Assembly (NCBI RefSeq): GCF_000143415.4 | Contig: NW_003314262.1 | Coordinates: 18,183-82,182, forward strand | Direction: 5' to 3' | Length of the DNA: 64,000 nucleotides | Source: Selaginella moellendorffii | Lineage: Eukaryota; Plantae; Lycopodiophyta | Shown here: piece by piece, positions 14,900-45,848 of the stretch | Layout of the letters: the number at the start of each line of letters is the position of its first letter | Numbering within the stretch: the stretch's first letter is position 1 | Notes under the pieces: generated by a model | Seen by the model: only the letters and a program-made list of their open reading frames with translations | Told to the model about the DNA's origin: nothing | Databases searched by the model: none | Translations under genes and position numbers: made by a program

Positions 14900-15250
14900 A
14901 TGGCCTCCAACTACAGCGATCTCGCCAAGTCCAGATCCAATGATTCCGGCATCACGCTCCAGCATCTCAAGCAGCGATCGCCCTCGGCACGCCGCGTTCT
15001 TGGCATCCTGGCGATCCTGGCGGTGGGAGCGATGGCGCTGGGGGGTGGCGCCGTGGCACTCTTGCTCATCTCGCCGATACTCCTCTTTTTTAGTCCTATC
15101 CTGGTGCCGCTGGCGGTCCTGGCGGCGATGGCGACGGGGGCGGCAGTGGCATTCATCGCTTTCGTGGCGGCCAGTACCTGGATCTATAGGTATGCCAGAG
15201 GCGGGCGGCCGGTTGGATCAAAGAGCCTGGATGCAGTGAAGACCCGCTGA
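14900..15250 (+). CDS. Oleosin (possibly C-terminally truncated)
   Basis: Long hydrophobic core with proline knot PILLFFSPILVP (PX5SPX3P), then WIYRYARGGRPVGS. ATG at 14900. Confidence 0.88.
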   Translation: MASNYSDLAKSRSNDSGITLQHLKQRSPSARRVLGILAILAVGAMALGGGAVALLLISPILLFFSPILVPLAVLAAMATGAAVAFIAFVAASTWIYRYARGGRPVGSKSLDAVKTR

Positions 15251-18200: not shown

Positions 18201-19069
18201 TCTTGGGAAAAAAACCAATTGCCCCTCTATAATTAATATATATACATATCCTATCCTATGGTTCATTGCCATAAAGGACCAAGAACAAAAGGATATAAAA
18301 CATGTAATAATAATATAAAACCATATTTGACTCTAATATCTAATATAATGTGAACTTCTTACTTGTTTATCTTATATTTGTTTATAAATATATAAAATGT
18401 AATGTCCAATAAACTAATCCTCCAAAAATTATGTATGTATAGAGGCTAAAACACTTCGTATAAAGAGATCAAGAACAATTAGCACCACTTACAGATCTAC
18501 TAATATCTCCTCCTAATGTTCCTCCAGATCTTGGCCCATCCACTAGAGAATCTTGACTATCTTTTATCATTCCGAGAAGAGGGGATGATATGAGGTCCAA
18601 GTGTACAAGTATGATGCCATATACTAATATTAGTGTAGTGAGATTGTTTTCAATTCAAACCACTCACTCATATATATTAGCTAGGGTTTTTGAGCTAATT
18701 AATATGTATATTTCTATATTCCATTTCCATATTCTATGCATTCATGCCAAACCTTATAAACTTGCGATCCAACTTGCCACAACACATGATATGGTCCCTT
18801 CCACTGAGTAAAAAGCTCTTTAGACAAACCATGTACTGTAAGATTAGGAAAATAGATTAATACTAAATCACTTATTTTGTACTCCATATGTGGATGACGA
18901 TGGGAGTTATAGCGTTGTTGTTGTCCCACTTGTATATGGCTCAAGTGTTTAGTAGATTGTGCTTAGATTAGTGGAAGAATGCTTGTCAAATATTAATCCC
19001 AAGATTTAACATCGACAACTCATGGCAATTACGAAGATAAACTCAATTCTATTAGTAGTATCAGATCAT

Positions 19070-20250
19070 TGTAAGGAACCAACTCGCCGAGGTGTCGTAG
19101 GTTAAAGGAACCCCGAAAGCATGACCAAAATGACAAAGAGTTCATCGAATGGGACCAAGTCGAAGATCGAGTCCAAGACCGACTCTAGGACCGAGTTCGA
19201 GATAGAGTCCGGAATCGAGTCCGAGACCGAATCGGGGACCGAGTTCGAGTTCGAGTTCGAGACCGAGTTCGAGACGGAGTCCGAGATCCGAAATCGGGTC
19301 CGAGACCGAGTCCGAGGTCAAGTCCGAGGTCAGGTCCGAGATCGGGTCCGAGGTCGGGTCCGAGATCGGGTCCGAGATCGAGTCCGAGATCGAGTCCGAG
19401 ACTGAATCCGAAGTCGGATCCGAAATCGGGTCCGAGATCGAGCTAGAGACTAAGTCCAAATACTAATACGGGTCAAGGGGTGAAAGCCCAAAGCGTGCGT
19501 CTCCCGGGGGGGGGGGGGGGGGGGGGCTGTAGGCGGTTCCAAAAGTATAGTAGGGATAGTGAGGTCCAGGAACCAGTTTTGAAGGGACTCTCCAGATGGG
19601 ATTCCAAACTGACTTGAGGTTGAGACTGGGACCGAGGGGCCTTGGGTGGGAGTGAGCATGGACTTGGTTGGTGCCAGAGGGGCCATCGAAGGAAGTGCTC
19701 AAGAGCAGCTCCCACTCCTGAAAGGGAAACCGATTGCGGTGCTCCCAGCTCATGTGGAGTGGTGCCCCACTTGAGTACCATGCGGCTCATTGGTCCTCGC
19801 CCTTCCTAGGGGCTTGGGCCTTCCTTCGGGATGGAAGTGGGGGGGTAGAGGTACCCATACCGGGCCGCTAGGCCACGGTGTTTCGCCCCGGCGTCCCGAA
19901 GCAAGTGTTGCACTCAAGACTTGGGATTTAGAGGGTCTTATGATCAAGTCTTGTGGTACCAAGGAATGTTAGGAACCTGGAAGCTTGGTGTGCTTGGCTG
20001 CTTGTGCTTGCGGGGAGTGTAGCCGAACCTTAAGTCCAGTCTAACCCGGAGAGGGGGATTGGGAGTGATTTGGGAATCCGTGGATGGATGGCTAACACTC
20101 CGTTGCTCATGCAGTGAGTAGCTGAAACCAAGTAGGTGCTGGTACCATAGGCGAGAACCTTGGCAAGGGAACTTAGCAAAAGCCAAGACAGTGTTGGACG
20201 GATAATCGAGGTAAGTTGGCAAATTGGAAAGGAAAAATTTGTGGCTTACA
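19070..20250 (+). repeat. Element A 5' LTR (contains a hexamer array at about 19150-19450 and a poly-G tract)
   Basis: Direct repeat of 32829-33965 with TG...CA ends. Confidence 0.97.
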
Positions 20251-20309
20251 ATTTGGTATCGGAGCCTTTTCCTCAGTTCTAGTGAAGGATAGAGGCGGAT
20301 TGCTGGGAG

Positions 20310-23300
20310 ATGGCAAGGGCAGGGCATAAGCGAACCCAGGCGGAGACGGAACCTCCACCAGAGCTGGAGCCTCCGGTTGAACAAGAGGCTATGGATGAGG
20401 AATCCTTGCATGAGGAGGACTCCAGTGAGGAAACTTCCAAACAGGAGTCCTGTGGCGAGGTTCGGTCGTCCAAGGCTCGATTGGACGTGCTAGAAGGACA
20501 GTTGGCACAGACCAATGCCCTGCTGGAGACTCTCGTACGCAAGTTAAAGCGTGACGAGAAGCGGAAGAAAAAGCGAAAGACTGCGGATGCTGGCAGCGCA
20601 GAAGGTGCGGACCCTTTGGCAGGGATTGAGGCAAAACCAGACAAGGTCGAACAGACCGAAGTGGAATCAGTCCCTCAGGCAGTTCCCAAGTATAAACCAA
20701 AGCCCCCACCGGTGTTCAAGGGAGTGAACGACTATAAGGTTGTGGAGGATTGGTTTTACGATATGGAGGACTACTTCCGAGTGTGGCGGTTACCGAGCTC
20801 GGAGAAGGTCCCATGTGCAAAACCATACTTGGCAGATAATGCCAAGTCTTGGTGGAGAACAACGGAGGCCAACGAAGGACCGGTGGCCACCTGGGACATG
20901 ATGAAGGCGAGGATCCGCGCAACATACGTTCCTCTGAATGCCACTCTACATCTGAGAGATGAGCTGAGTAGGCTGAAGCAGACTGGAACCATCCAGGAAT
21001 ATGTGATTGGGTTCATGGCAAAGAGGATACTTGTCACGGACATGGGGGATATGATGCGTTCCATGCCTTTATATCAGGTTTGCAAACCTGGGCTCGCGGT
21101 GAGGTGATGCGCTGGAACCCGACCAACTACAAGGAAGCGTTGGATGTGGCCATCAAGGTGCATTTCAACGATAACCTGCGAAAGGGGAACACGACGGGGT
21201 TAGGATTCACATTTAGCAAAGGGGCCAAACCAAGGGGAACATATAGCAGGGGGAAATTCAAGAAGAGTTTCTCTAAGAATGAGTCCTCGGGGTTCCGGAA
21301 AGGCAAATCCGGTGGCCAGCGAACGAGTACGTGGGGGAGTCAAGCGAAAAGAGACAAACCCACGGATAAGAAAGTCAAGTCATATAGCAGCGTGGGAAAC
21401 AACGTATGCTACAACTGCGGTGAAGCGGGACACTTTTCGAGGGAATGTCCCTACCCGAAGAAGGCCAGAGCCAATATGGCCATCAAGTCGGGTGAAGTCC
21501 AAACTGAGGTATGTGATCCAGTCCCTAACTCAAAGTTACTCATTACACGAGCAACTTTGGTAGAGAGTCGTTCGCGACATCTACTAGCCCTCCGAGGGAA
21601 GCTCGGAGGTAGCTTTGTTAAGATCCTTATTGACATGGGTGCTTCGGATAATTTTGTGGCTGCAGACATAGTCCGGCAAGTCGGACTAACGGTGCAGCGG
21701 CTAGGCAAACCAAGGACTATAGAGTTTGTTCAAGGTAGCCAAAGCACCGATGAGGTACTTCGACAAGCGAGAGTCGAAGTAGGGACTTGGAAAGTAGACA
21801 TGGACTTCACCGTGTTGGACATGGCGGGATTTGACGTGATCTTCGGAATGGATTGGTTCAATCGGTTCGTGGTAGCCCTACATGGACAAAGTAGGAACCT
21901 TGTGGTACTGGCGAATGCCCAAGGAAGAAGATCTAGGGTGGAGGCCCAGGATCTAAAGGTAGGGCAAAGCAAGGCCAAAGAATCCTGTTTAAACCTGGTG
22001 TCCACGAGAGGACAACTCACTAAAGGAACTAAGGCAGCCTTTTTGTGCTTACTCTCAGTGAAGAGTGACAAAAAGACAGGAACGAAAGAAGTACCTTTAG
22101 TGATCTAGCGGGTGTTGGAACAATTCCAGGATACCATGCCGGAGGAGCTACCGGCGGGGTTGCCCCCCGCACGACCGATAGAACATAAGATTGAGCTGGT
22201 CGAGGGCGCTGAGGCGGTGGTTCGTCCACCCTATCGTTTGAACGAAAAAGAACTCGTGGAGCTCAAGCGCCAACTAGAGGAGTTGGTGGACAAGAGGTAT
22301 GTTAGGTTGAGCAAATCGCCGTATGGGGCGCCAGTGCTATTTATGAAAAAGAAAGATGGGTCTATGTGCATGTGCATAGACTACCGGTTGCTCAACAAGT
22401 ATACAAAGAAGAACAAGTACCCTTTGCCAAGGATTGAGGACCTGTTCGATAGGTTGGGAAAGGCCAAATACTTCTCGAGAATTGACCTAAGGTCAGGATA
22501 CTACCAGATCAGGGTAGCGGAGGAAGATGTCGAGAAGACAACCTGTCGAACGAGGTATGGGAGCTTTGAGTTTCTGGTGATGCCCTTCGGACTATACAAT
22601 GCGCGGGCAACGTTTTCGGCGTTGATGAACCATATCTTTGTACCTTATCTGGATCACTTTGTGGTCGTCTATATTGACGACATCCTGATCTATAGCAAAA
22701 CGTGCCAAACACTTGACGAAGGTGTTTGAGAAACTAAGGGAACACCAGCTGTATGCTAAAGAGAGCAAATGTGACTTTGCTCAACAAGAGGTAAAGTTTC
22801 TCGGGCATGTGGTGGGCAAGGATGGGCTCAAGGTGGACCCTGAGAAGGTCCAAGCGATCCAGGATTGGGAGCGACCATCGAATGTACACGAGTTAAGGGC
22901 ATTCTTGGGGCTATGCAACTACTATCGAAAGTTTATCAGACACTATTCGAGAGTAGCCCTGCCCTTAACAGACCAAACGGGAAAAGGGAAAATAGTATGG
23001 ACAGCAGAATGTGAGGCGGCATTCGTCCACCTCAAAGGGAAGTTGAGGAAGGCCCCCGTGTTGGCATTACCAGACTTTGGTAAAGACTTTGAGGTAGAAA
23101 CAGATGCTTCAGACTTTGCGTTGGGCGCAGTTTTGAAGCAGGACAACCATCCAGTAGCATTCTTCTCGAAGAAGTTGGATAAGGCTCAACGGAAGTGGCC
23201 TGCCCATGAGAAGGAATTGTTTGCGGTGGTCAAGGCGCTCAAGGAGTGGCGACACTACCTTGGGAGACACTTCAAAGTTTACACGGACAATGTGGCAACG

Positions 23301-23950
23301 AAACACTTCTTGTCACAGCCCGACCTAAGGGGAAAACAAGGTCGGTGGGCCAATGCTTTGGCCGAGTTTGATTGCGAGATCCTGTACAAGCCTTGGAAGA
23401 GCAACATCGTGGCAGATGCGCTAAGTCGAAAAGCGAGCTTGAAGTTGGCGATATCTAGCGCGACAGCAACCTTTTGGGATGATGTGTGGACCGCATACGA
23501 GAGCGATGGTCTAGCACAAGAAGTGTTGCTGAGGAATCTAGAGGCGCGGGAAGCTCACCAGAGAGGTGAGCTGCCAACGGAAGAGAAAACGGGCTATGCG
23601 GAACGCAACGGACTCATATATTACAAGCAAACGAGGGTGTATGTTTCAGAAGGGGAACTAAGGAAGGTAGCCTTGGAAGAGTGTCATGACGGACCTCTCA
23701 CGAGACATGGCGAAGTGCCCAAGACGATGGGCTTACTCAAAAGGAAGTATCACTGGCCAGATATGGCTAAGGACGTCCAAGACTATGTAAAGACATGTCC
23801 AACATGTCAGCAAGTCAAAGCCATGACGAAGGCTAGTGGGGGCTTGTTGCAAAGCATTCCCATTCCAGATCGTCCGTGGAAATGTCTCACGATAGACTTC
23901 ATCACGGGACTACCCCCAAGCGAGGGGTTCGATGCGATATTCGTGGTGGT
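20310..23950 (+). pseudogene. Element A gag-pol, part 1 (gag, zinc knuckle, protease, RT, RNase H, integrase N-terminus)
   Basis: Motifs CYNCGEAGHFSREC, LIDMGAS, YIDD, TDASDFALG, HD..HG..CPTC. Lesions: frameshift at about 21050, TAG at 22106, deletion at about 22702. Confidence 0.93.
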
Positions 23951-26900
23951 TGTCGCGAATGTGACTTCGGGTATCGAAAGATACTTGTCGGCCAGTCCTT
24001 ACGGGCACTCTTTCCTTACTGCCACGACGGCAGGAGGTCAGTACTGCTGGTCCCTTTTATGGTCTCCACTCAAGCTAGTTGAGAAACTGGTCATCGCATG
24101 TGCACTTGACCAGATGAGCATAAGGACGGAATTCCTACATGCTATTAGTCAAGCATACTTGACCTGGTTAGAGAAACTCATTCGTTGACTTGCACTTGCT
24201 AGTGTTGGGAACCCCCGCAATATTGAGACTAGTCCTTCAATATTCGCTAGATGATAGCTTACCGTGTCTGCCAAACACCCTCGCTATCATACCCTTTGTG
24301 TTGGTCTCATTTCGGTCCCAAATGCTATTTATGGAAAGTGTCTAGATTAGCTCATTTGGCATATCTACAGAATGTAGAGATCGGCCTGAACACAATGGTG
24401 TTTGTTCCGTGTCCAAATTCGCAATCTAAGGACATTCCATATTTAGTAAGTTTCGGACTTGTCCCAAAGACTAACTCCTGGTACTAAGGGAGGCTTGGGG
24501 TGAAAGCCCAAAGCGTATGTCCCTCAAGGGGGGGGGGGGGGGGGCTTTGGGGGGTTCCAAATGTATAATAGGGATAGTGGTTGGAATGCATGTCCCACCC
24601 CCTGAAACATTAGTTTGGCTCCCGCTGGGCTGTGTCCCTCCTTGTTCTGCGTCCGGCTTGGGTCTAAGCCCAAGCTCCACGCTGCTCTAGTCGGGGGAGT
24701 ACCCTCCTTCTCGCGTTAGGCCACCGGTATGCCAAAATTGTGCCAGACTCCGTCTGACACCATTTTGCATGCAAGTGCTAGATACGGGGAGCTGGTGCTC
24801 GTGGGATTGTACCGGACCCTCGTTTCGTAGCGCAACCGGCTTGGAGTTCGGCTCTAAATTCAGGTGCGCTACATTTGGTATCAGAGGAATTGTCTTAGTG
24901 ATTTCTATCCAACTTTTGTCAGATTTTCTGACTCAAGTTGCATACGCAGAGACTTTTCTAGTAGATCCGAAGCGACCTGTGTAGGATTAGTTGGATAGCA
25001 CCATTCGGTAAGAACGTTGTATGCATGTTCAGTTACTGATAGAGGCATGCATGCAGCTAGCAGGATGGTGAAGAGGAACCGTGCTGATGACGCTGAAACC
25101 TCTAGACGGGCGAATCGAGAGGAGGAAACTCCTGCTAGAGATGCTGCAGAAGAGGCAGAGGCTGAGTCAAAAGAGGAAGAGCCGAATGCTGCGGTGCTGC
25201 AGCGTATGGCTCAGGAAGTCGAGATCGAGAATTTGCGAAAGGAGATTCGCAAATTGAAGAAGGAGAACAAAAAGAGGAAGAAAGAAGCTGAGGCAGCTAA
25301 ACCAGCTAAGCCTAAGCAACCAGACTCCTCTTCAAGTTCTGAGGACGATGAAGTTTTGCAGCCGCCCCCGGTTGCACGAGTTTCAAAGTTCAAGCCCCCA
25401 AAACCACCCAACTTCAGAGGCATGCGGGACTATCAGGTTTTGGAAGACTGGGTCTATGATATGGAGAACTACTTCATAGCGGCAGACGTAGATGATCGTA
25501 CGAAAGTTGCATGCGCGCAATCCTTTCTCACCGATCATGCCAAAACTTGGTGGCGCCAAGTGTGTGCTGAAAAGGGGTAGACTAGAAGTTGGACCAAGAT
25601 GCGGTCTCGTATCCGTAAGGAATACTTGCCGGATGATCTTGGTCTGAGACTTTGTGCGGAGCTGCGGCGGTTAAAGCAGCGAGGGGATCTCATGCATTAT
25701 GTTAATGCGTTTGCTCAGAAGCGCATTATGATTGCAAATATGAGTGACGAAGATGCTCGGAGTTATTTTCTGGAGGGTTTAAGTTCATTTTCTCGCAATG
25801 AGATTTTGAAGTTTAAGCCGAAGACGTACCTGAAGTGTAAGGAGGCAGCGCAGCAAGTTGCCTTTAGTCACTCACTCATGGAACAATATCAGCAACCGTA
25901 TGCTAGTAACTCAGACAAGAATAAGAATTCTGGGAATAAACAAAGTGATCGGAAACAGAGGGTGGAAAGTAGGTTCCGCCCTGGAGGCTCACAAGCAACA
26001 GTTAATAAAGGTGGTGGTGGTTGGACACCACCAGCAGCTTCTTCTGGTCCTAGGCCCTCTGCTCCTCCTCCTAGTGGGTATAAGCAGTAGCAACCTGCAA
26101 AACCTGCCCCTAGCGGAACGGGTAGTGTGGGTCATTGCTTCCATTGTGGAGAGTCAGGACATAGGTCCTCAGAATGTCCCAACAAGCATAAGACAAAGTC
26201 TCGGGTTAATGTCATGAGGGAAGACGGTGGTGATGGAGCTGAAGGGGTTGACGAGTTAGTCAATGCAGACTATGAGGAAGAAGAGGTGAGTAACTTTTGT
26301 TGCTTTCCTCAAGCTTTTCTTGCAGTCAATGCAAACACTGATCTGTTGATGTATCTGGTAGGCTTTGTCCGTGGACACCGAATCCGAGTGATGATTGACA
26401 CGGGAGCTACGCACAGCGTGATATCCGAAGACTTAGTTAAGTTGTTAGGATTGAATGCTGAGCAAATGTCGCCTATGCACTTCTGGTTTGCGGAAGGTGG
26501 GCAAGTAGCCAGAAAGTTTGTGAGTGATGTTCCAATAAAGATATCCAAGTGGAAAGAAAGAGTGGACTTGGTAGTGTTGAAGATACCAGATTTTCAGATG
26601 GTGTTTGGTATGGACTTCTTCAACAATTATATAAAAGGGATTTATGGTGCTGGACAAAGTTGTATCACATTGAAGTCAGAAGGACGTCCTGATGTATCCT
26701 TTCAGTTGCAAAAGTGTTCCTCAAAGGATTGGGATGCAAAGTTCCTGACTGCGAGGGCCGCTCAAAAAGCAGCTAAGAGGGGATGTCAGACCTTTTGGGT
26801 TCAAGTGATGGAAGCTGAGGGTGTTAATGACTCAGTTCGAATCGGCGACAGGGTTGATCCTGTACCAAAGAGGATATTGGAGTTGTTGGCGAGGAACCAG

Positions 26901-29900
26901 GATATCTTTCCGAAGGATTTGCCGCCAGGGCTACCCCCTAGCCGTGAGGTTGATCATCGGATTGAGGTTATTCCGGGTTTTAAACCACCCACGAAAGCTC
27001 CGTATCGGTTGAACATCAAGGAGATGGCTGAACTCAAGAAGCAACTCACGGAGCTTCTTGACAAAGGTCATATCCGACCAAGCAAGTCACCTTATAGAGC
27101 ACCAGTTCTTTTTGTTATGAAAAAGGATGGAACCATGAGGATGTGTATTGACTATCGGGCACTCAATAAGATCACGGTCAAGAACAGTTATCCTTTGCCT
27201 CGCATTGATGACTTGTTTGACCAACTCTTAAAGGCTAAGTATTTTACGCGACTTGATTTGCGGTCCGGGTATCATCAAATACGGGTGGCAGATCAGGATG
27301 TGGAGAAGACAGCCTTTAAGACTCGGTACGGATCTTATGAGTTCCTTGTCATGCCATTCGGGTTATGCAATGCTCCGGCAACGTTCAGCACTATGATGGA
27401 TAGAATATTTGGAGATTATTTGGATGCATTTGTCGTCCTATATATTGACGATGTTCTAGTCTTTAGTGAAACATTGAAGGATCATTTGAAACACTTGGAG
27501 CTGGTGTTTCAGAAGTTGCGCGAACACAAACTGTATGCTAAGGAAAGTAAATGCGCTTTTGGTCAATTGCGCGTATACTTTCTCAGACATATAGTTGGTG
27601 GTGGCGTGATTGAAGTCGATCCAAAAAAGGTGGAAGCGGTGAAGTCCTGGGAAGTTCCAACCACTGTATTAGATGTTCGTTCCTTTCTCGGTTTGGCGGG
27701 ATACTATCGCAAGTTTGTCCGCAATTTTGCAAGAATTGCTCTTCCGTTGACTGAGTTGACGAAGAGTAGTATTCCGTTTCATTGGACACCAGCTTGTCAG
27801 CGTGCTTTTGTATGGTTGAAGGAGATCTTGACTACAGTTCCTATTCTTAGGATCCCAGATCTTGATAAACCCTTCGAAGTGCATTGTGATGCGTCTGGCT
27901 ATGCTATTGGTGCTGTGTTGCAGCAAGATTGTGACAAAGCGGTTGGTGTTACGCTAAGGCGACATGGTTGTCCCGTTGTGTTCTATTCCAAGAAATTAGA
28001 TGAGACCCAACGAAGATGGCCAACGCATGAGAAAGAGATGTTTGCTATAGTGTCGGCCTTGGAACACTGGAGACACTACTTGGGTGGACATACCAAGGTT
28101 TATACAGATAGTAACACACTAAGCTACTTTGCTACGCAGCCTAAGCTTACACCGAAGCAGGCTCGTTGGCAAGAGAAGCTTGCTAGATATGATATTGAAA
28201 TCATATATAAACCTAGTAAAGACAATATTGTTCCGGATGCATTGAGTCGTCAAGCTCAATTCCGGGCAATATCAGCAATCAGTTCGGACTGGTTGGAAGA
28301 CGTTCGGGCTTCATATGGAAGTGATCTATTGGCGAAGATAATCTTACGCCGTGCGGAGTTGTCGAAGCAAAGCCCTGGTAGCGAAGCAGCGAAAGTTGCT
28401 AGCCGCACTAATGCAAAGCTTCACTTCTCAGTTCGGGATGGGCTTATATTCTATAAGCAAGAAAGATTGTATCTTCCCTCTAAGGATCTTCAGCAGTTAT
28501 TTCTGCGGGACATGGTGGACAGCAGCAGGACATGGTGGACAGCAAAAGACTCTAGCTTCATTGAAAAAGGGATTTTTCTGGTCTGGTATGGTGATGTAGC
28601 GGCTTATGTCCATTCCTGCCCGATATGTCAGCAATGTAAGCACAGAATTGAGAAGCAGGCTGGAAAGTTGCAATGCATTCCAGTACCGGCATGGCCATTT
28701 CAAAGTGTGACACTTGATTTTGTCACTTGTTTGCCGAAGTCTAAGGGTTATGATACTTTGATGGTGGTTGTGGATCGGCTGTCAAAGATTGCACACTTCA
28801 TTCCAACTGTGAGAACAGTAAATGTGAAACAAGCAGCAAAGCTCTTTTTCCATGAAGTAGTGCGAGTTCGTGGTCTTCCTGAAGAAATGATCTCAGATAG
28901 AGATTCGAGGTTTACGGGGAAGTTTTGGGGAACCCTATTCCAGTTGTTTGGTACCAAGTTGAAGTTTAGTACAGCTTATCATCCTCAAACTGATGGGCAA
29001 ACCGAACGCGTGAATGCTCAAGTTGAGGATTATCTGCGGTACTATGTCGCGGCGGACCAACGTGACTGGGTTGAGCATTTGGATACAGCAGAAATCTGTT
29101 ATAACAACACATTTCACAGCGCTATAGGCTGTTCTCCATGGGAGATGCTGCAAGGGAATGCTTGTGGGGTTCCTCAACAGATTGTTGTACCGAAACCAAT
29201 GACTGAAGTGTTGGTCCCAGCCGTTGAAACTTATGCGGAGCAGCTACACCAAGGTTGGTCTAAAGCTACCGAGGCGATGGGCAAAGCTCAGGATAGGTAT
29301 CGACGTGATAAAGATCAGTATCGTTGGAATGTATCCTATCAAGTGGGAGATCAGGTGTGGCTATCTTCCCGAAACTTGAACATTAAGGGTTCTTTGTCTC
29401 GGAAGCTCTTGCCAAGATATGTTGGACCCTATCGGGTGCTAAAACGCATTGGTGATGTATCCTATCGGTTGGATCTGCCTGTGGAGAATTCCAATGTTCA
29501 TAATGTATTTCATGCCAATCTATTGGCTCCTTACACTATGGATGCTGCACGTCAAGGGGAGATTCGTCTGCCACCAGATGTTGTGGACGGTTAACCTGAA
29601 TACGAAGTTGAAAGCATTCTGGCTTGTTGCCGGAAACATGGTGGTTGTGCAAAGGAATATCTCGTTAAGTGGAAAGGTTACCCGACCTGTGAATCAACCT
29701 GGGAACCTCTTAGTAATCTTACACATGCTCGTGAGCTTGTCACGGAGTATGAGCATCGTAATAAAGATTAGTTTTTGTAAATCTTGTAATCAATCTTGCA
29801 AATTAATAAAGTAATATATTTCTATAAATCAAAATGTCATTTCTCTCGTTCATTCGTACTTGGGTCAGTTTTGGCAGGCTGACTTCGGCACTTCGGTGCA

Positions 29901-31305
29901 TGGGTCCAATCCATAACCATGGGGATAACTATTATAGACTGATCACAAGTCCCCGCCTCTCTCTCAGTGACTCACTTTTGAAAAGGGGCGTGGTCGTGTA
30001 AACAACTTAATTTGCCAGTTTATAATAGTTGTCTAAATCTTCCCGACGGGGTTGATTTCTTGCTCAGGGGATGTGAGCCTCTAGCCTTCTCCCTATGTCC
30101 CTGCGGGCAGGGATATATCATTCCTTTGTAAGCCGAGTGGTACTCGGAGCAGCAAGGGGGGCTAACTCTGTTAGTCCTTTCCTTGTCGGTGACGGCCGGA
30201 GGGTGTCTGAGTCTTAACGTCTTTGGACGTAGAGGAGAGGTCGTTCCATAACTCATTTAAGTCAGTATGTTTCCCACATAGTGTGCTTTCCGTTAAATTT
30301 CGGAGTTGTTTCCTTGACGGTTTGCTAAACTCGGGTATACATCGACGAGGACGTCGATCTTCCTCAAGGGGGGGAGAGTGTCGCGAATGTGACTTCGGGT
30401 ATCGAAAGATACTTGTCGGCCAGTCCTTACGGGCACTCTTTCCTTACTGCCACGACGGCAGGAGGTCGGTACTGCTGGTCCCTTTTATGGTCTCCACTCA
30501 AGCTAGTTGAGAAACTGGTCATCGCATGTGCACTTGACCAGATGAGCATAAGGATGGAATTCCTACATGCTATTAGTCAAGCATACTTGACCTGGTTAGA
30601 GAAACTCATTCGTTGACTTGCACTTGCTAGTGTTGGGAACCCCCGCGATATTGAGACTAGTCCCTCAATATTCGCTAGATGATAGCTTACCGTGTCTGCC
30701 AAACACCCTCGCTATCATACCCTTTGTGTTGGTCTCATTTCGGTCCCAAATGCTATTTATAAAAAGTGTCTAGATTAGCTCATTTGGCATATCTACGGAA
30801 TGTAGAGATCGGCCTGAACACAATGGTGTTCGTTCCGTGTCCAAATTCGCAATCTAAGGACATTCCATATTTAGTAAGTTTCGGACTTGTCCCAGAGACT
30901 AACTCCTGGTACTAAGGGAGGCTTGGGGTGAAAGCCCAAAGCGTATGTCCCTCAAGGGGGGGGGGGGGGGGGGGGGCTGTGGGGGGTTCCAAATGTATAG
31001 TAGGGATAGTGGTTGGAATGCATGTCCAACCACCTGAGACATTAGTTTGGCTCCCGCTGGGCTGTGTCGCTCCTTGTTCTGCATCTGGCTTGGGTTTAAG
31101 CCCAAGCTCCACGCTGCTCTAGTCGGTGGAGTACCCTCCTTCTCGCGTTAGGCCACCGGTATGCCAAAATTGTGCCAGACTCCGTTTGACACCATTTTGC
31201 GTGCAGGTGCTGGATACGGGGAGCTGGTGCTCGTGGGATTGTACCGGACCCTCGTTTCGTAGCGCAATGGGCTTGGAGTTCGGCTCCAAATTCAGGTGTG
31301 CTACA
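23951..31305 (+). mobile_element. Element B: full-length chromoviral Ty3/gypsy nested in the integrase of A
   Basis: LTRs 23951-24873 and 30379-31305. TSD GTGGT. PBS TGGTATCAGAG at 24876-86. PPT AAGGGGGGGAGAG at 30366-78. Removing B restores DAIFVVVDRFSK in A. Confidence 0.97.
25065..29771 (+). pseudogene. Element B gag-pol with chromodomain
   Basis: Single frame with stops at 25578, 26088 and 29592. Motifs [36 protein letters not shown] and chromodomain YEVESIL..YLVKWKGYPTCESTWEP. Confidence 0.93.
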
Positions 31306-31531
31306 GTGGTGGACCGATTTTCAAAGATGGCACATTTCATACCCACCACAACGAAAGTGGATGCGGAAGGTGTGGCGAAGCTGTTCTTTGAACAAGTGGT
31401 TCGAGTGCGGGGAAGGCCGGAAGAGATTATCTTAGATCGAGATAAGATCTTCACCAGTAGGTTCTGGAGGACACTCCTAGAACAGTATTGCACCAAATTG
31501 AAATTCAGCACAGCCTATCACCCACAGACAG

Positions 31532-31578
31532 GTAATGGGTATTAAGTCAAGATTGATGGCACTAACACTTCTTGACAG
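31532..31578 (+). other. Predicted spliceosomal intron 1 in element A integrase (47 nt)
   Basis: CAG|GTAATG...CACTAAC...TTGACAG|AC. Removal gives HPQTDGQMER. Confidence 0.8.
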
Positions 31579-31993
31579 ACGGACAAATGGAAAGGGTGAA
31601 TAGGCAGCTGGAGGATTATTTGCGATGCTATGTCTCGGGAGACCAGACCGACTGGGTAAGTCATTTGGGACTTGCGGAAATGTGTTACAACAACTCACCA
31701 CATTCGAGCATCGGGGTGAGTCCATGGGAAGTCATCAATGGGCAAGCTATTGAAGGTCCTGTGGAACTCGGCGTGGCCGAGTATCATGGAGAGTTACCCG
31801 CAGTGGAGGCATTCACGGCGGAAAGACTCAACATTTGGAATCTAGTGAGGGATTCCTAACGGGCTCAACAAAGGCAAACTAAGTACGTGAACCAAAAGCG
31901 TCGGGATGTGGAGTTCCAAGCTGGGGAGAAGGTGTGGCTGAACACCAAGAACCTTAGGCTACCAAGTGGGATCAGCCGGAAGTTGACCCAAAG

Positions 31994-32045
31994 GTAAAAA
32001 TGCATGTATTCCTATAAATGAATTGATCTTGAGTTCCTTAAGCAG
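31994..32045 (+). other. Predicted spliceosomal intron 2 in element A integrase (52 nt)
   Basis: AAG|GTAAAA...AT-rich...AAGCAG|A. Removal gives KLTQRFAGPYEI. Confidence 0.8.
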
Positions 32046-32828
32046 ATTCGCGGGGCCTTACGAGATTGAGGCTCGAATCGGTAAAGTGGCTTACCATCTC
32101 CGACTTCCTCGAGAGATGGGGAAGATGCATCCCGTGTTCCACGTGAACTTACTCAAGCCGTATTTTGAGGATCCGCTTCGCAAGGACCAAGTAAGACCTT
32201 TACCTGAGGTTATCCAAGGGGAGGAGGAATACGAAGTCGAGGCCATCCTCAATGCGCGCAAGAGCAAGCGACAAGGACGCGAGGTGAGAGAGTTCCATGT
32301 GAAGTGGAAAGGATTTCCACACTGCGAAGCAACAGGGAACCGGAGGAGAACCTAACGAACGCGCGAGATCTAGTGGAGGAATTTTTGCATGGCAGAACTC
32401 TATGTACTTATGCAAAGTTCAATTAAAAGTATCAATTTGAGAAGTTGAGCAATGGCATATGTTGGGACCCGAAGGCGCGCCGAAGGTAAGCTAATTAGCA
32501 TGGGTTAGCTAGGTCGACCAAGCGTAGGGAGCTACGCCCGACTCCCTGCGGGGATATCGAATCCGTAGACGTATTCTACGGAGGTTGGGTTCGAGTCCCA
32601 ACCCCCTAGTAAAGCAAGGCTGGGTTCAAGTCCCGACCCCATACTAGGGCATGGTGAGGTGAGGAGTATAGAGACACCTATATTCCGTTGTCATGGGCTC
32701 TTGGCCGGGGAGGCTAACTTAGGCACACCGCTAAGTGGGGGGATGCCCCCGGAGACATGGTCAACAAGTTGTAGGATAAAACGAGATGTTCGATGTGGGC
32801 ATCGAACTTCTTCTATGGGTGGTGGAGT

Positions 32829-33965
32829 TGTAAGGAACCAACTCGCCGAGGTGTCGTAGGCTAAAGGAACCCCGAAAGCATGACCAAAATGACAAAGAGT
32901 TCATCGGATGGGACCAAGTCGAAGATCGAGTCCAAGACCGACTCTAGGATCGAGTTCGAGATAGAGTCCGGAATCGAGTCCGAGACCGAATCGGGGACCG
33001 AGTTCGAGTCCGAGTTCGAGACCGAGTTCGAGACGGAGTCCGAGATCCGAAATCGGGTCCGAGGTCGAGTCCGAGGTCGGGTCCGAGATCGGGTCCGAGA
33101 TCGAGTCCGAGATCGAGTCCGAGACCGAATCCGAAGTCAGATCTGAAATTGGGTCCGAGATCGAGCCAGAGACTAAGTCCAAATACTAATACGGGTCAAG
33201 GGGTGAAAGCCCAAAGTGTGCGTCTCCCAGGGGGGGGGGGGTTGCAGAGGGTTCCAAAAGTATAGTAGGGATAGTGAGGTCCAAGAACCAGTTTTGAAGG
33301 GACTCTCCAATTAGGCTTCCAAACCGACTTGAGGTTGAGACTGGGACCGAGGGGCCTTGGGTGGAAGTGAGCATGGACTTGGCTGGTGCCAGAGGGGCCA
33401 TCCAAGGAAGTGCTCAAGAGCAACTCCCACTCCTGAAAGGGAAACCGATTGCGGTGCTCCCAGCTCATGTGGAGTGGTGCCCCACTTGAGTACCATACGG
33501 CTCATTGGTCCTCGCCCTTCCTAGGGGCTTGGGCCTTCCTTCGGGATGGAAGTGGGGGGGTAGAGGTACCCATACCGGGCCGCTAGGCCACGGTGTTTCG
33601 CCCCGGCGTCCCGAAGCAAGTGTTGCACTCAAGACTTGGGATTTAGAGGGTCCCATGATCAAGTCTTGTGGTACCAAGGAATGTTAGGAACCTGGAAGCT
33701 TGGTGTGCTTGGTTGCTTGTGCTTGCGGGGAGTGTAGCCGAACCTTAAGTCCAGTCTAACCCGGGGAGGGGGATTGGGAGTGATTTGGGAATCCGTGGAA
33801 GGATGGCTAACACTCCGTTGCTCGTGCAGTGAGTAGCTGAAACCAAGTAGGAGTTGGTACCATAGGCAAGAACCTTGGCAAGGGAACTTAGCAAAAGCCA
33901 AGACAGTGTTGGACGGATAGTCGAGGTAAGCTGGTAAATTGGAAAGGAAAAATTTGTGGCTTACA
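32829..33965 (+). repeat. Element A 3' LTR
   Basis: Repeat of 19070-20250 with a shorter hexamer array. Preceded by an atypical PPT (TATGGGTGGTGGAGT). Confidence 0.97.
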
Positions 33966-36409
33966 ATCATGACCATATAGAAGTTTATATGGTAAAGCAC
34001 TAATAGCACCTTTATAAAATCCATATACTAAAGAGATGACAAATAACCATCCCAATTCGAATGTTAAAAGTTCATGTACTTCACGATTATCCCTTTAAAG
34101 ATTCGAATAAACCATTCTACCAAACTATATGATTGTCGATGATAAGCACTCGTGAAAGTGTGGCATATCCCCAACCAAGATGTTAAGATGTGAAATGACT
34201 CAGCCATAAATGCAAGACTATTATCTGAAAGAATTCGCTCTAGATAATAATGTTAGAACACCACTTGATTGAGGAGGAAGTATCTAATAACAATTGCAGG
34301 CGAACTAACAACTTCTACCAAGTCAAGTAATTAGAATAATAATGACATACTCATTGCCAGTAGTTGAATGTGGAAAAGGCCCCATCAAATCAAATGCTTG
34401 TACTTCCGTAGCACAAAAAGGAGTATTACAAGCTTGACACTAAACGTATAACATCACGTCATATCTTCAGTTAATAGAAAAACCTAGTAGCTTCTCAATC
34501 ATATGATGATGTCCCATATTCCTACATATCATGATAGGTATGGAGAAAGTATAAAATAAAAATTGAAGGCACCACCACTCATAAATGATCATTGAAATTC
34601 ATCCCCACAAAATAAAGAAGTTTGTCCTCAATGTGATATTGAGAATACAAATGCCAAAATGGCAAGTTATCAATAAGTGATGCAAAATTCTCAAACTTAT
34701 TGTGAAAACTTTAGATCCATAACTCAACTTTTTGAGCTTTATGAACCTCATCACGAGAAGGTAAATTATGAATACTAAACATTAAGTATAACAATTGCTA
34801 ACGGCACGGAATTCTTGTCTAAAAAATCCATAAACCTTGGAACAACAAACTTGTTAAAAATATAAAAAGAGAGCAAAGAAGGAAGAGAAGCTCAAGAAAG
34901 GGTGTCATAAAACTCCCCAGGTGATGAATAACATTGAAATCATATATATGAAGTTTTAAAACCCATCAAGTAGTACCAACTGAAGCTTGAGATTGCCCAT
35001 ATGCACAATTACATTTGCCTCATCTCGTGCATATGGCTATAAAGAATGAAAATTGGCTCTACTACATGACGCAAATAGAGACGGCAACTTGTGTTAACAG
35101 ACTAAGCAATAAAGGATAAACTCAAGCTTGTATCAACTAATATGGAAAAAATAATAAAAGACCTCTTATTACAAAAATAAACTTGGAAAGTAAACATTTG
35201 ATGAATTGGTGCCAAATAAACCCCTTGATAATACTCTTGAAAAAAACATAGAGGGGTCACCAATTTATTTGCACAAGGACCCTTTGTTACTTGTATGATT
35301 CCTTATTTCCTAGAAGCATCTCAATGTCCAGACTTTCTACTACAATAGCATTAATAGGACGTCGTTGATGCTAAGGTTTCCACCCAGAAAATGGAGATTG
35401 TCAATCTGGAAAACACTAATAATGTTGACAAGTGTGACCAATTGCATCATATGACTAGCAGTAGACATCACGACCACAACTATGTCCTCGCCCTTGTCCT
35501 TGAACTCAAGTAATAATAGCATTAACCTCAATTGGAACAAAACCATCTCTTTTATGAAATGGAGTTGAAAGACATGCAATAAGAATTGGAAGATGTGATG
35601 TTTCATAATGTTATGTCAAGTGAAGTGCATCATCAAAGGTGGTTGGACTAAGTGTATGCACAAGTTTTACAAAATCTTGGCGAAATATTGGCCACAACAT
35701 TCCCAACTTGATCCACTTTGACATATTTGACTCCGCATGAAGCAAGAAATTTTAGAAATGAATATTAAATAGCTCTTGATGATGCAATTGTTAGAAAGTG
35801 TCATTTCAATCATCGGCATGTCTAAATGCAGGTTTGAAGATGTCTAGAAGAATGCTCCAATCCTTACGAGTGGCTGCACTCAAACCATTCTACCACTGTA
35901 GTGTCATCCTTTGGAGATATGTGGGAAACTCACGCAAACACTAACTCATCCCTAAAATGACATGTGACAATCATTATAAAGTGATTGACTCAATAGTACA
36001 CATCATCCCTAAGACTCCTATGAAAGAACTTTAGTTGAATGTGAGGATTAGCAATAAAAGCAAGAGGAGTTGTACCACATGCCATAAATACTGTCATTAA
36101 TTGAGTTTGATTGTTCAACTATAAACATATAACATCAAGTAATTGCACCAATTGTTGCTCCAAAGTCAAAGGAGGAGGAGGCTAATGCTCTATCATGAAG
36201 ATGAACAAAAAGGAAAAACCAAAAGAGAAAAAATTGAAAAAGTTATCAAGAAAAGGAGATCTAAATGATGCAAAAACTAATCTAAGCTCCTAAATTTGGA
36301 CTTTCTGGGAGGTCACCTTACCCATTATTATTCAAACCCAAGGACAATTAATCCCAAGTATCCCAAGACTCTTAACCAATTGGAAAAAGGGGTGCATTTT
36401 TATTCATTA

Positions 36410-38279
36410 TGTTGCAAATATGACTATAGGTATTGAAATTTATTTGTCAACTAATTTTTTCGAATATTCTTTCCTTATTGCCACGATGGTAGGAAGTCAG
36501 TATTGCTAGATCCTTATTAGTCTCCATATAAGCTAGCGGAGAAACTGATTAATGCCTATGTACTTAAATTGGATAAACATAAAGTAGGAATTCCTATGTG
36601 TTTTTTGCTGAGCAGACTCAACTTAGTTTAAGAAACTCCTGGCATTGATTTGCAGTTACTAATGTTGGGAACCCCCACGATATTAAACTTAGTCTCTTAA
36701 TATTCACTAGATGATAACTTACCGTGTCTAGAGTGTTTAAGCCTAAGTTCCACACCATACTAGCTGATAGAATACCTATATCCTTGCATTAGGCCACTAA
36801 TATGCTGAAATAGTGCTAAACTCTATTTGGCTCTGTTTTGTCTGCTGGTCCTGGCATTGGGATGTTAGACGCTTTATAACTATTTCAAATTGCTTTGTGC
36901 TCTTGTCCCTTTGCTCCTTGGGCTATATGCTTGAGAGTTGTTTCATGCTCCAGTACCTTTGCTCCTTGGTTCTATGCTTAGAAATTTAGCTTTGTTCTTG
37001 TAGCCATAAATTTTTTTCTTTCCAATTTGCTAGGTTACCTTATCTATTTGACTATCACAGACTTGGCTTTAGTTAACTTCCCTCATTAAGGTTCCTATTT
37101 ATTGTACCAGCTTCTACTTGGTCCTACTTGGTTTTAGCAACTCATTACATAAGCAATAAAGCATTAGTTATTCATCCATGGTTTCCCAAATTTTCTCTCA
37201 ATCTCCCTCCCCAGGTTAGATTGGACTTAAGATTCGGCTATACTCCTTACAGGAATGAGTAGCCAAGCACACTAAACTTCCAAGTTCTTAGCATCCTTTG
37301 GTACAACAAAACTTGATCATGAGACCCTCTAAATCCTAAGCCTTGGGTGCAATATTTGCTTCAGGACACTAGAGGGAAACACTATGGTTTAATAGCCCGG
37401 TATGAGTACCCCTACTTCCCCACTTTCATCCCAAAGGAAAGGTCCAAGCCCCTAAGAGGGGTGAGGACTAATGAGCTATAAGGTATTTAAGTGGGGTACC
37501 ACTCCATATGAGCTGAGAGCACCGTAATTAGTTTCCTTTCCAGGAGTGGGAGTTACTCCTGAACACTTCCTTGGGTGGCCCCTCTGGCACCTCCTAAGTA
37601 TATACTCACTTCCACCTAAGGCCTCTAAGCTCTAGCCTCAACCTCAAGTTAGTTTGGAAACACCACTAAAGAGTTCATTCAAGACTGATTCCTACTATCC
37701 CTATTATACTTTTGGAACCCCCTACAGTGCCCCCCCAGGAGACATATGCTTTGGGCTTTCACCCCATAACTTGTATTAGTATTCAGACTTGGTCTTGAAC
37801 TCAATCTTAGACTCGATTTCTAACTTGACCTTGGACTTTGTCTTAGACTCAATCTTAGACCCAACCTCAGACTCGGTCTCGGACTCGGTTTTGAACTCAG
37901 TCTCAAACCCAATCTCAGATCTCAGACTCGATCTCGAACTCAGTCTCGGACTCAGTCTCAAACTTGGTCTCGAAGTCAATCTCGGACTCAATCTCAAACT
38001 CAGTCTTGAATTCAGTTTTAGAGCCAATCTCGAACTCGATCTCAGACTCAATCTCATTTGATGAACTTTTTATCATTTCAGTTGTGCTTTCGAGAATCCT
38101 TTAGCCTACAACACCTCAGGGAGTTAATTCTTTACAATTTCTTTATTCAGTGGCCCAAGACCCTAAAACTTGGGTTCCACTCCACTGTCCTTAAGGACAC
38201 GTGGCATGTGATATGTGGCATATGGCATATAGAGGGTTTAGGTTCTACTTTATAGTTATAAAATAAAAGGTGAAAACCA
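36410..38279 (+). mobile_element. Decayed B-type solo LTR (same subtype as 520-1538), interrupted by an A-family solo LTR
   Basis: Starts TGTTGCAAATATGACT, similar to TGTCGCGAATGTGACT. Degenerate TSD CATTA/CATGA. Confidence 0.75.
36999..38136 (-). mobile_element. Older A-family solo LTR
   Basis: Aligns end to end with the reverse complement of the A LTR, including the hexamer array at 37780-38055. Heavy CpG decay. Confidence 0.9.
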
Positions 38280-40424: not shown

Positions 40425-42317
40425 GCTAGATCTAAAGTAAATCCTTAGAGACAATTAAAGCTACCCCTCATCTTCACCAATGTAGAATATAAAAATATAT
40501 ATATTAATTAACCCAAAAACCAATCAATCTGACAATTATCAAATCCCACTATGTTAATATTAGTATATAGTATCGTAGCCATACACTTAAACCTTACTGT
40601 ATATTAATATTAGTGTAGTGGGATTTTGATAGCCATCAAGTTTAAAATGTATTATTTAAATTATGGTAATTTTTGTACAACAAACAATTTGTTTGCCAAT
40701 CACTATAAAGTTTCTAGGTTGGTTTTGCTGGTCAAGATCCCCCGTGAGTGAGGATATGGGAACCAGGCTGGATTTGGGTGGAACCAATAATCGTAAGGGA
40801 TCTATCAAACAATGACAAGAAATTTTAATCAAGCTCTCAAGTCCGGTCCCTTTCCCAGTCGTCTCTAGCGTTATAGCTGGGGAGAAATTTTCGCATGGTT
40901 GGGAATGAAGATCGATCTGTGCCTTGCCAAAGACAAGTTGTGGGACGGATTGATTGATTGATTTATGAAATAGAAGAGAAAGAGAGAGAACATCTCACAT
41001 GAACAGTGCAGTGGAGTGTCCCTTTCTTGACAGAATGAGCTGAATCCAGCACACCAACAACAACAATGTAAGTAGCTAGGACGCGAAAAGAATTTATAAG
41101 GTTGGGGACACCTTTTTGGAAAGGTGACGACCGCGTTTGTTGGTCCCAGGGAAAGTTTTTTTCTGACCTAAGCTCTCCGAATATCCGGTCTTTGAATGCG
41201 ATGAACCTTCCGAGGAGATCAGATCACCCGACAGCACAGCTAGCCAGCCTGTGTTTGAAAATTCACCCTCTGGGATTAAAATCTCCGCTTTTTTTACCAC
41301 ACACCCCTCCAGCCCATTTCCAGCCGTGGTGAAAGCGTCCGTGACAACAAACAGGCTTGCTTTTGCAGTGAACAAACCCACTTTACTTTATTTTTTTACT
41401 GCGTTTTGCAGGCTCAACACACACACACCATGCCGTATGTGTATATGTGCCTGAATGTGATATCTGTGCCACAGCATGGCAAGTCACCATGATATGTGTG
41501 CCAGAGCATGACAAGTTACCAGGAAGCTTCCCTGCGAGATTTAAATCTCGAATTTGAATCATCAAGAACCATGGCCTCCAAAACCAAATATAGTTTTATT
41601 TCCCCTCTAAACTAGATGCACACGTAAAAACTATGCTAGTCAAGGTTTGTCACCAATCATTGCACTGCTTACGAAAGAAAGGTGGCAGCTCAGCGGCAGC
41701 CAAGCCGCCAGTCCAGCGGTAAGATTTGGAAATTCCTGGAATATTTAAGGGGAATTTTTTTGGCCCTGCAGGCACCAGTGGCAGGCTCGAATCCAGGCAC
41801 TATTGTTAACATTTCCAGTGTGTTACGTCGTCGGCAGGCAGGCCCCCGGGCCCCGATTAAAGTAATAATACTTTGGGATTAAAGTAATCGGGTTATCTCC
41901 ACCTGCTTAAAAGCGCTGGAGAATATCTTGACCGCGCAGCTGGCAGCAAAGAAGCTGCCTAAACAAAGACCCTGGGCTTACGTTAAGCACGGGCCGTACG
42001 CTCGTACGTAACACGCTGGACGAATCCCGGCGTGGCGATTGTCTTGTTTTTATTTTCCAGCTCATGCCATCCTGTGGGAATAAATTCCTGGGCAAGGGGT
42101 AAGAAAATTTGAACCAATTTACCTTTACGAACCCATACTACATGTCATCATTGCCATGGTGACGTGGCGCCAGCATGGCCAGCGTTTATAAGCGTGGCCG
42201 GGCCGTGGAGCTGGAACATCGATCGAAGAACGCAACAGCGAGGAAGAAGAAGGCGCTCTTGGGAATTCCAAAGGGAATATCTTGTGTGTGGCTCTTTTGA
42301 GATTCGCATTCGCGGCA

Positions 42318-43604
42318 ATGGGGAGGCTGGCCCTCTGCGTGTTGATCGCCACCATGGTGATCGTCTCCCAGGCTGCCCCTGGAAACTTCAACGATCTCTT
42401 CACCTCCAACAACGATCACGTCAAAGTGGATGGCTCTGGCCAAGTTCGTCTCGTCTTGGATCATCAATCAGGTTGATTCTTTTGCCTGGATCGATCGCAT
42501 TGCAATGCTCACGCTCTCTCGGGCTTTGGGTGTTTGATTCCTTCTCTTCCACAGCTGCTGGCTTCGCGTCCAAGAACAAGTATCTCTTCGGCAGAGTGAG
42601 CATGCAAATCAAGCTTGTTCCCGGTGATTCTGCTGGAACTGTGGCAGCCTACTACGTAAATCTCCCAAACTCGCGCCTATCCATCGCCATTTCTTCCGCA
42701 TTTCTGACCGTGGAGTTGCTTGTGACAGATGTCCTCGGACGATTACAGGACCCGCGACGAGATCGATCTCGAGTTTCTGGGCAACACGTCGGGCAATCCA
42801 TACATCCTCCAGACCAACGTCTACGCCAATGGCGTCGGCAACCGCGAGCAGCGAGTCTACCTCTGGTTTGATCCCACTGCCGACTTCCACTCGTACTCGA
42901 TCCTCTGGAACCAGAAGCAGATCGTGTACGTGATCACACCCATCTCGCCCATTTCCTCCGATTCTCTCCCTTTCGATCCACCCATCTCTCCGTGCTCTGT
43001 TTTCTTGGCGAGTTCTTTCAAACTTCTTTGGATCCATCGAGCAATGTGGTATCGCCCATCACCGCAAATTTCTTGTTCGATCGACCCACTGTTTCCTATT
43101 CTTTCCTGGGTCCTCTGGATCACTGTTTGTGCTCAATGTTCTTGCGATTCTTTTGGGATTCCTTTGCTTGGTGCAAGCTAGCTAGAAAGACTGATTGATC
43201 GTGGGCTTTGTCTTTGCAGATTCTTCGTGGATTCCACCCCCATTCGCGTGTTTAAGAACAACCAGGACATGGGCCTGCCTTTCCCCACGAAGCAGTCAAT
43301 GGGAGTCTACTCGAGCCTGTGGAACGCCGACGACTGGGCGACCAGGGGTGGACTCGTCAAGACCGACTGGAGCCACGCCCCCTTCATCGCCTCCTACAAG
43401 AACTTTGATCTTGACGCGTGTCAGGCATCGTCGGGATCGTGCGGCCCAAACAGCGGCAAATGGTGGGACTCGTCCGCCTGGCAAGCTCTCAGCCCCAGCG
43501 ACGCAGGCAAGCTCAAATGGGTCAAGAAGAACTACATGATCTACAACTACTGCACGGATTCGGCCAGATTCCCCTCCAGACCTGCCGAGTGCGCGCGTGA
43601 CTGA
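42318..43604 (+). CDS. XTH: Xyloglucan endotransglucosylase/hydrolase (GH16), 4 exons: 42318-42471, 42555-42655, 42729-42925, 43220-43604
   Basis: Signal peptide, catalytic [10 protein letters not shown] motif, [11 protein letters not shown], conserved 101-nt exon 2, GT-AG introns. Confidence 0.96.
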
Positions 43605-44389: not shown

Positions 44390-45848
44390 ATGGCCGGAAT
44401 GAACCCACCAATGGAGCTCAGGAGCGAGGAGAATGAGGATGCTTGCCCGGATTCTTGGGAACTGGCCGATCTGGAGGAGAGTATGAAGCGGCTTGTGCCC
44501 GCTGGTTGCAGTCTTGGCCTCCACAAAGAGAGTGGCGGCGGCGACGATGATTCGGCACAAATTGACGAGTTCTTGCGTGAGGCGCTCCAGAATCCTCACG
44601 ACCGTATGACTAGTAAGTCTGTTTTTGGCATTTTCTTCTTTCCTAGTACCAATAATTGTGTTTTCTTTTCCAGTTCTAAGGCTAGAACACGACGTGGAGA
44701 GATTCGTAAGAAATCCAAAGCAGTTTCAGCTTGAGTTCCCTCCTATGGCGTCGTCCTACTTGCGCCTAGCAGTTCACAGGGTAGCGCAACACTACTACCT
44801 TATAACTTCGGTGATTGACAGCAACGTGGAAGGATGCAGGATCATAGTCCGGAAGAGTGGGGAGAATAAGTTTCCCTCGATCAGGCTCGCGGACATTCCT
44901 GTTGCCGCGGATGGTGGCAGCAACTCCAACACCAAGTTTGTGATCAAGCAGAGACCACAGGCTAGTTTTATATCCGGTGGAGATAGCAGCGGGGCTGCTA
45001 GTGGATCCGGAAGCAATGCCTCCAAGAGTATGGAGGAACGGAACGAGGAGTATAACAAGGCCCGAGCCAGGATTTTTCGGCATGAGCAGGAACAGAGAGC
45101 TTATGACGAGCTGCTGGAAGTAGAGAAGAGGAAAACTGCAAAGGTGATAGAAGTAAGAGAGAGCGCTTCAACCCCCGAGCAGGGAAGGCAGCGGATGAAC
45201 GCCGGATCTGGCAGTAATAGCTGCAGCAGCAGCAGCAGCAGCAGCGGTGGCAGCGGCAGCAAAGCAGACAAAGATCAATCCAGCAAGTCGAGGCAAAAGG
45301 TTGCTATATTCCGTGACCGAGAGAAAGATCGCAAAGATCCCGATTACGATCGGAACTATGACAGGTATAAGTTCTTAGCCGAGGTTACAACCTTCGTTGA
45401 TGCCTTTCTTTGCATTTGCAGGTATTCACAGCGGTTTGATCCAGGTTTTGGACTAAACCAGCCACCAGCCTTTGGTATGCAAGCTCGGTATACTCCTGTT
45501 GTGAATTATAACACAGAGTTTCCCCAGCTTGGCTGTCCTCCTGTAAGGCAAATGCCACCGCAAGTAACCAGTCAATCGGGCTGGAGGCACGCATACCAAC
45601 AACACCAGGATATGATGCGAGCCCCGGCACCGTTTAATCCTCCGCCACCGCGGGTGTCTCCACACACCAACATGGCGACTTATATGTCGCAGTACCCATA
45701 TCCTCGGCCTTCTATGGCCTATCACTACTCTTCGCAAGTTTCTCAGGCAAGTCTAAATCTCGTTGCTCGTTCTAGTAACTTTGTTTTTCTAACAATCGCC
45801 GATTCTTTCCAGCCTGAAGCTGGTTCTACACAGGCTCGTCGCCATTAA
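44390..45848 (+). CDS. R3H and SUZ domain RNA-binding protein; exons 44390-44612, 44674-45364, 45422-45746, 45813-45848
   Basis: SYLRLAVHRVAQHY (R3H) and KSMEERNEEYNKARARIF (SUZ). Telo-box AAACCCTAA at about 44024. Confidence 0.9.

Follow-up and report, generated by a model that had tools for sequence, protein, structure and literature searches.

Introns are expected to be lost when spliced RNA is reverse transcribed, and for this reason retroelements that keep introns are rare. A locus of the lycophyte Selaginella moellendorffii raises the question whether an LTR retrotransposon can carry two spliceosomal introns inside its integrase gene and, if so, how they would be kept. We analysed a stretch of 64,000 nt (contig NW_003314262.1 of assembly GCF_000143415.4, positions 18,183 to 82,182 of the forward strand), which is called the window in the following and to which all coordinates refer. 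The two inserts in question, at 31532-31578 and 31994-32045, are located in the integrase catalytic core and in the C-terminal domain of an element belonging to a family with very many copies.

The element carrying the inserts, here element A, extends from 19070 to 33965 on the + strand. Comparison of the window with itself and inspection of the LTR ends revealed a nested pair of LTR retrotransposons, both on the + strand, with element B residing within A. The 5′ LTR of A (19070-20250, + strand, 1181 nt) and its 3′ LTR (32829-33965, + strand, 1137 nt) both run from TG to CA and are 92.9% alike, and the element is flanked by a perfect 5-bp TSD, ATCAT, at 19065-19069 and 33966-33970, in agreement with an earlier note on this DNA which had described similar LTRs and a perfect TSD. 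A tandem array of a 12-nt unit (consensus AGATCGAGTCCG) covers 19164-19442 of the 5′ LTR with about 24 copies at 75% matches, and the corresponding part of the 3′ LTR likewise holds a 12-nt tandem array. Two bases past the 5′ LTR, a PBS-like sequence, TGGTATCGGAGC (20254-20265, + strand), was found, which we take to match the 3′ end of initiator tRNA-Met; this agrees with the published description of a tRNA-Met PBS. Directly upstream of the 3′ LTR lies a polypurine-tract-like run (32817-32827, + strand).

The coding sequence of A is also on the + strand and is split by B and by the two inserts, which we number as introns 1 and 2. Its first part (20310-23950) comprises gag, protease (PR), RT, RNase H, the integrase zinc finger and the start of the integrase core, as identified by Pfam (RT_RNaseH, Integrase_H2C2) and by tblastn to B's pol. 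Downstream of B, the integrase core continues through ..AYHPQT at 31306-31531 (Pfam rve, E 6e-10), which is the final part of the long ORF1. Intron 1 is followed by exon 2 (31579-31993), reaching from the catalytic Glu motif DGQMERVN to ..SRKLTQ. After intron 2, exon 3 (32046-32424) contains the remaining SH3-like domain (SH3_Tf2-1, E 5e-16) and a chromodomain (Chromo, E 7e-7). Pfam gives the domain order RT_RNaseH, Integrase_H2C2, rve, SH3_Tf2-1 and Chromo, with PR and RT placed by tblastn to B's pol. Because of its RT/RNase H, integrase zinc finger and core, SH3-like domain and chromodomain, A is a Ty3/gypsy chromovirus.

The window copy of A is dead and old and is a mere witness of the family design. 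Its upstream pol has decayed, with frame changes near 21060 and 22690 and a stop near 22076. In exon 2, a stop is present at 31857-31859, and in exon 3 a frameshift near 32334 leads to an early end at 32355. At 31857 and 32334, other family copies deviate by small indels, and both lesions therefore look private to the window copy.

Element B (23951-31305, + strand, 7355 bp; LTRs of 923-927 bp, TSD GTGGT) is inserted in the integrase core of A, about 225 nt before insert 1, thereby splitting ..GFDAIFVV/VDRFSKMAHF... With LTRs 96.7% alike as compared to 92.9% in A, B is the younger of the two. Its gag is found in separate ORFs (25017-25580 and 25599-26090), and its pol ORF (26127-29594, 1155 aa) encodes protease, RT, RNase H, integrase and SH3-like domain without interruption. 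Remains of related elements are probably also present on the minus strand, where LTR-like sequence at 36998-38138, 73-75% alike to A's LTRs, adjoins a segment at 36410-36990 resembling B's LTR. The sequence directly past the 3′ end of A (33966-36276) is 71-77% alike to 1657-5248, where an RT-like region is found at 2303-3539 on the minus strand; from this likeness, A seems to be inserted in another, older repeat. Host genes next to the elements are an oleosin gene (14720-15250), a GH16/XTH-like ORF (42164-43181), a gene for an R3H-SUZ protein (44625-45848) and an ALOG/LSH gene on the minus strand (53073-54230), a protein search with the last of which yielded generic land-plant matches only.

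Insert 1 (31532-31578, + strand) is 47 nt long, begins with GTAATG, contains CTAAC, a candidate branch-site motif, about 13 nt before its 3′ end, and ends with ACAG. It is located in phase 1 within the Asp codon of HPQT-D-GQxE. Insert 2 (31994-32045, + strand) is 52 nt long, runs from GTAAAA to GCAG, has weak branch-site candidates only, and lies in phase 2 within the SH3-like C-terminal domain. Both inserts are preceded by an exonic AG. Their GC contents of 0.38 and 0.31, respectively, are below those of the flanking coding parts (0.48-0.51), and neither length is divisible by 3. If retained, insert 1 would bring a stop after four codons of the incoming frame (31543-31545) and insert 2 after one codon (31995-31997). 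Exact GT..AG excision yields a single frame reading ..AYHPQT/DGQMERVN.. and ..SRKLTQ/RFAGPYEIE... Hence the two GT-AG inserts of 47 and 52 nt reported in the earlier note could be confirmed, as could their AT-richness, their lengths not being multiples of 3, their in-frame stops and the restoration of HPQT/DGQ and KLTQ/RFAGPY upon removal.

Short direct repeats were noticed at the intron borders. GACAG closes both exon 1 (31527-31531) and intron 1 (31574-31578), and AGGT brackets intron 2 (31992-31995 and 32044-32047), given the G that the family has at 32046. Such repeats resemble the small duplications of newly gained introns, and they are only weakly beyond chance given the required AG. Copying of one intron from the other was rejected by global alignment against shuffles (p = 0.15), and an origin of either as a copy of a host intron was rejected as well, with alignments to seven host introns scoring no higher. 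Short-word BLAST of both introns across the window returned only chance 11-mer matches.

For comparison with host introns, we used a DEAH-box helicase gene at about 47.5-50.2 kb (Pfam HA2_C, OB_NTP_bind). Seven introns of 65, 55, 59, 50, 60, 63 and 50 nt were read from its sequence, with GC contents of 0.30-0.40; they start with GTAAGT, GTAAAT, GTTAGT or similar and end with AG, mostly CAG, and their excision results in 400 residues without a stop. The inserts of A (47 and 52 nt; GC 0.38 and 0.31) fall in this host intron class, and the size match claimed previously therefore holds against these seven introns of 50-65 nt. GT and AG at fixed ends would be expected by chance at a rate of 1/256 per insert, and two frame-restoring inserts, each after an exonic AG and each of host intron size, would lie far beyond chance.

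That the related element B has no insert at either site, also claimed before, was evident from the alignment of its pol to A, which passes both insert sites without extra residues in B (B residues 881-955, 952-1097 and 1095-1155). The PR-RT region of A aligns to B's pol without an insert, too. We take the Glu of HPQTDGQxER to be the third catalytic residue of DDE integrases. The integrase of B could be aligned to Ty3 integrase (7Q5B, E 9e-36) and to PFV integrase straight through HPQTDGQxER; therefore, intron 1 of A is located four residues before the catalytic Glu.

Element A fits a family described earlier. SM1-Galahad of S. moellendorffii (Novikova 2012, PMC3350952) has a length of about 7.5 kb, LTRs of 1076/1146 bp with TG..CA ends and a tRNA-Met PBS, and is present in hundreds of copies which are about 95% alike, with "no intact copy". 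Its published consensus has an ORF1 of 3885 bp up to the integrase core, followed by two short ORFs (316 and 309 bp), of which the second contains the chromodomain (PMC3350952). Without B, A also measures about 7.5 kb; its ORF1, which begins with the gag ATG (20310) and is closed by the stop within intron 1, comprises 3876 nt, and its two short ORFs match the published sizes if each is taken to start at its first ATG codon. Compared by description rather than by direct sequence alignment, A fits SM1-Galahad on every published point, and B fits SM2-Galahad (7353 bp, LTR of 919 bp, TGT..ACA; PMC3350952). The word intron has 0 occurrences in that article, in which the ORF breaks were treated as absence of intact copies, and reading these breaks as introns is new relative to it. 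If the introns are real, they explain the description of SM1-Galahad from 2012 as lacking an intact copy, and counts of intact elements in Selaginella that are based on ORFs would misjudge this family.

The inserts could be filler DNA gained by the window copy after its integration, as would suit the age of this copy and its further lesions. Mapping of reads and contigs covered 31306-32828 of the window, and 17866 contigs of X1, a DNA sequencing run of the same organism, were found on this segment. The summed depth amounted to about 0.98 and 0.96 million in the bins of insert 1 and to about 0.97 and 0.95 million in those of insert 2, with 0.87-1.16 million in neighbouring bins and no dip over either insert. 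This flat depth, in a run with thousands of family contigs, led us to reject filler DNA private to the window copy. A 746-nt contig of X5, a run filed under another organism, is collinear with 31306-32039 and carries both inserts as well; it may represent carry-over from the same species (low depth, 98% identity) and was not counted as independent. The published consensus, moreover, is broken at the same places. Filler DNA is thus an explanation that can practically be dismissed, and both inserts belong to the family and not to the window copy alone, a conclusion that is well supported. The uniqueness of the inserts to this copy, which the earlier note had named as a possible refutation, was accordingly not observed.

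Searches for relatives outside these runs returned little. With exon 2 as query, a protein search gave no candidate, and an exhaustive search of representative proteins gave distant relatives only, whose identity over part of exon 2 did not exceed about 60%. A protein search with the RNaseH-integrase ORF yielded no match above 48% identity, and a 24-mer from exon 2 had no exact match in the metagenome contigs scanned.

Evidence for removal of the inserts from RNA was sought in two data sets, as the earlier note had proposed to look for junction reads. X15 is an assembly of 26 million letters which is RNA only by guess. It contains a single contig (1083 nt) matching 31306-31526, 31574-31994 and 32047-32383, with the three parts adjacent at contig positions 321/322 and 745/746 and both inserts absent. 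The small shifts relative to GT..AG reflect ambiguous alignment, caused by the GACAG repeat at insert 1 and by the family's G at 32046, and the joined sequence is exactly the GT..AG-spliced form. This contig carries rare variants; its letter at 31815, for instance, recurs in a single DNA contig of X1. The transcript therefore probably derives from one particular copy and not from the bulk of the family. X22, on record as RNA-seq with raw 150-nt reads, was read to about 12% and gave 9 reads in all. One of them spans 31489 and 31652, with bin depths that fit 31486-31526 plus 31574-31682, so that intron 1 is skipped; another read continues 25 nt into intron 2 (covering 32014) and is unspliced there. 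These two reads are too few to judge the extent of splicing in X22. The junction search was thus successful for both inserts in X15 and for insert 1 in X22, but not for insert 2 in X22. Splicing of family transcripts occurs, on the thin basis of one contig and one read.

The X15 contig and the skipping X22 read might also represent carried-in DNA or a rare, processed DNA copy without introns, instead of spliced transcripts. X15 is marked 'RNA?' only, and although no joint removing an insert was present among the best-supported 15 of the 29 joints in the X1 DNA, the 14 weaker ones leave room for a very rare intron-less copy. On the other hand, a single contig in 26 million letters of X15, against 17866 in the DNA run, fits a transcriptome, and X22 is recorded as RNA-seq. 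An intron-less DNA copy would, in addition, itself derive from spliced RNA. We therefore regard a DNA origin of these sequences as very improbable.

The main alternative to functional introns concerns the origin of the family. The integrase of its founder could have been broken by two small insertions, and the family could have spread non-autonomously with the integrase of another element, so that the GT..AG ends and occasional (cryptic) splicing would be incidental. In line with this, no intact copy was reported in 2012 (PMC3350952), a related and uninterrupted element, B, is present in the same genome and even inside the window copy of A, and the RNA evidence for splicing is sparse. Against it stand the full intron anatomy of both inserts, their host size and the exact restoration of the frame. 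Furthermore, other copies deviate at the positions of the exon 2 stop and the exon 3 frameshift, and ORF2 and ORF3 with the chromodomain are preserved in the published consensus, whereas untranslated sequence is not expected to stay open. A and B also have different LTR ends (TGTAAGG..CTTACA and TGTCGCG..GCTACA, respectively) and pols that are only about 45% identical; because of these differences, cross-mobilisation is not obviously favoured. Hence, a broken and cross-mobilised family is unlikely. We consider it likely that both inserts are true spliceosomal introns of the U2 type which are fixed in a chromovirus family of high copy number, and that a transcript with two fates accounts for them.

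With both inserts read as introns, an expression strategy can be proposed. The unspliced long ORF ends four codons into intron 1 and can therefore encode Gag, protease, RT and RNase H, but only an integrase that stops short of the catalytic Glu. The doubly spliced RNA is the sole message able to give complete integrase with catalytic Glu, SH3-like C-terminal domain and chromodomain. The unspliced RNA would serve as template for reverse transcription, whereby every new DNA copy would inherit both introns, and spliced RNA would have to be kept out of this step. The coding limit of unspliced RNA, the need for double splicing to obtain full integrase and the retention of the introns in genomic copies are established here. 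Since the introns are found family-wide in DNA, new copies should arise from intron-retaining RNA, while full integrase should need a spliced mRNA. This separation of genomic RNA and integrase mRNA had already been suggested in the earlier note; family-wide introns with stops in both of them are in agreement with it, and packaging of the unspliced and exclusion of the spliced RNA are parts of it that we infer.

Complete integrase would be supplied to particles carrying unspliced RNA and would thus act in trans. The earlier suggestion that splicing would force Pol as a whole to act in trans was overstated, however. Unspliced RNA could give rise to everything encoded upstream of intron 1, namely PR, RT and RNase H together with the first two thirds of integrase, and what depends on splicing in A's Pol is confined to the catalytic Glu, the SH3-like C-terminal domain and the chromodomain. 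Splicing efficiency would set the amount of integrase and might in this way act as a regulator or limiter of its dose. In its complete form, the proposal is that the two mini-introns constitute an obligatory host-splicing switch between replication RNA and integrase message, with the transposition rate governed by splicing and integrase always acting in trans; we put this forward tentatively, as a plausible scheme that falls somewhat short of being probable. The introns may also make the transcript resemble a host gene to RNA-silencing surveillance. The family offers a natural system for studying how a retroelement separates message from genome and keeps spliced RNA out of particles.

Among known systems, Ogre and EVADE are the sole plant LTR elements named with functional introns in a review from 2025 (PMC12786077), and in the literature on introns of chromoviruses or in integrase no closer case than those discussed here was found. 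In the Ty1/copia elements BARE1 of barley and EVADE/Copia93 of Arabidopsis, splicing of the element's own transcript shapes the protein output, as in A (PMC3735527, PMC12786077). However, splicing yields a subgenomic Gag-only message there, and the unspliced RNA encodes the whole polyprotein, whereas the unspliced RNA of A cannot encode active integrase. In BARE, translation and reverse transcription draw on separate RNA pools (PMC3735527), which by analogy may provide a ready model for why spliced RNA of A would not be copied. Retroviruses and Cer1 of C. elegans are similar in that, according to PMC10309623, unspliced genomic RNA escapes splicing and is exported and packaged, while spliced RNAs are messages. 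In these elements, splicing removes gag-pol for expression of a downstream gene and gag-pol is made from unspliced RNA; in A, by contrast, the introns are inside pol itself.

Ogre of legumes (Ty3/gypsy, Tat/Ogre) resembles A in that genomic copies keep an intron interrupting the polyprotein coding sequence. According to PMC6317226, only a fraction of the transcripts has the Ogre intron removed, and translation of downstream pol needs splicing. Of these features, A has introns that are kept in genomic copies and stops in both of them that block downstream pol. A differs from Ogre by having two mini-introns (47 and 52 nt), located in the integrase catalytic core and in the SH3-like domain, so that only the completion of integrase is splice-dependent. 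It is also a lycophyte chromovirus with a chromodomain and not a member of Ogre/Tat, although it works in an Ogre-like manner. Element A is therefore an Ogre-like intron-containing LTR retrotransposon with a new intron site and from a different lineage.
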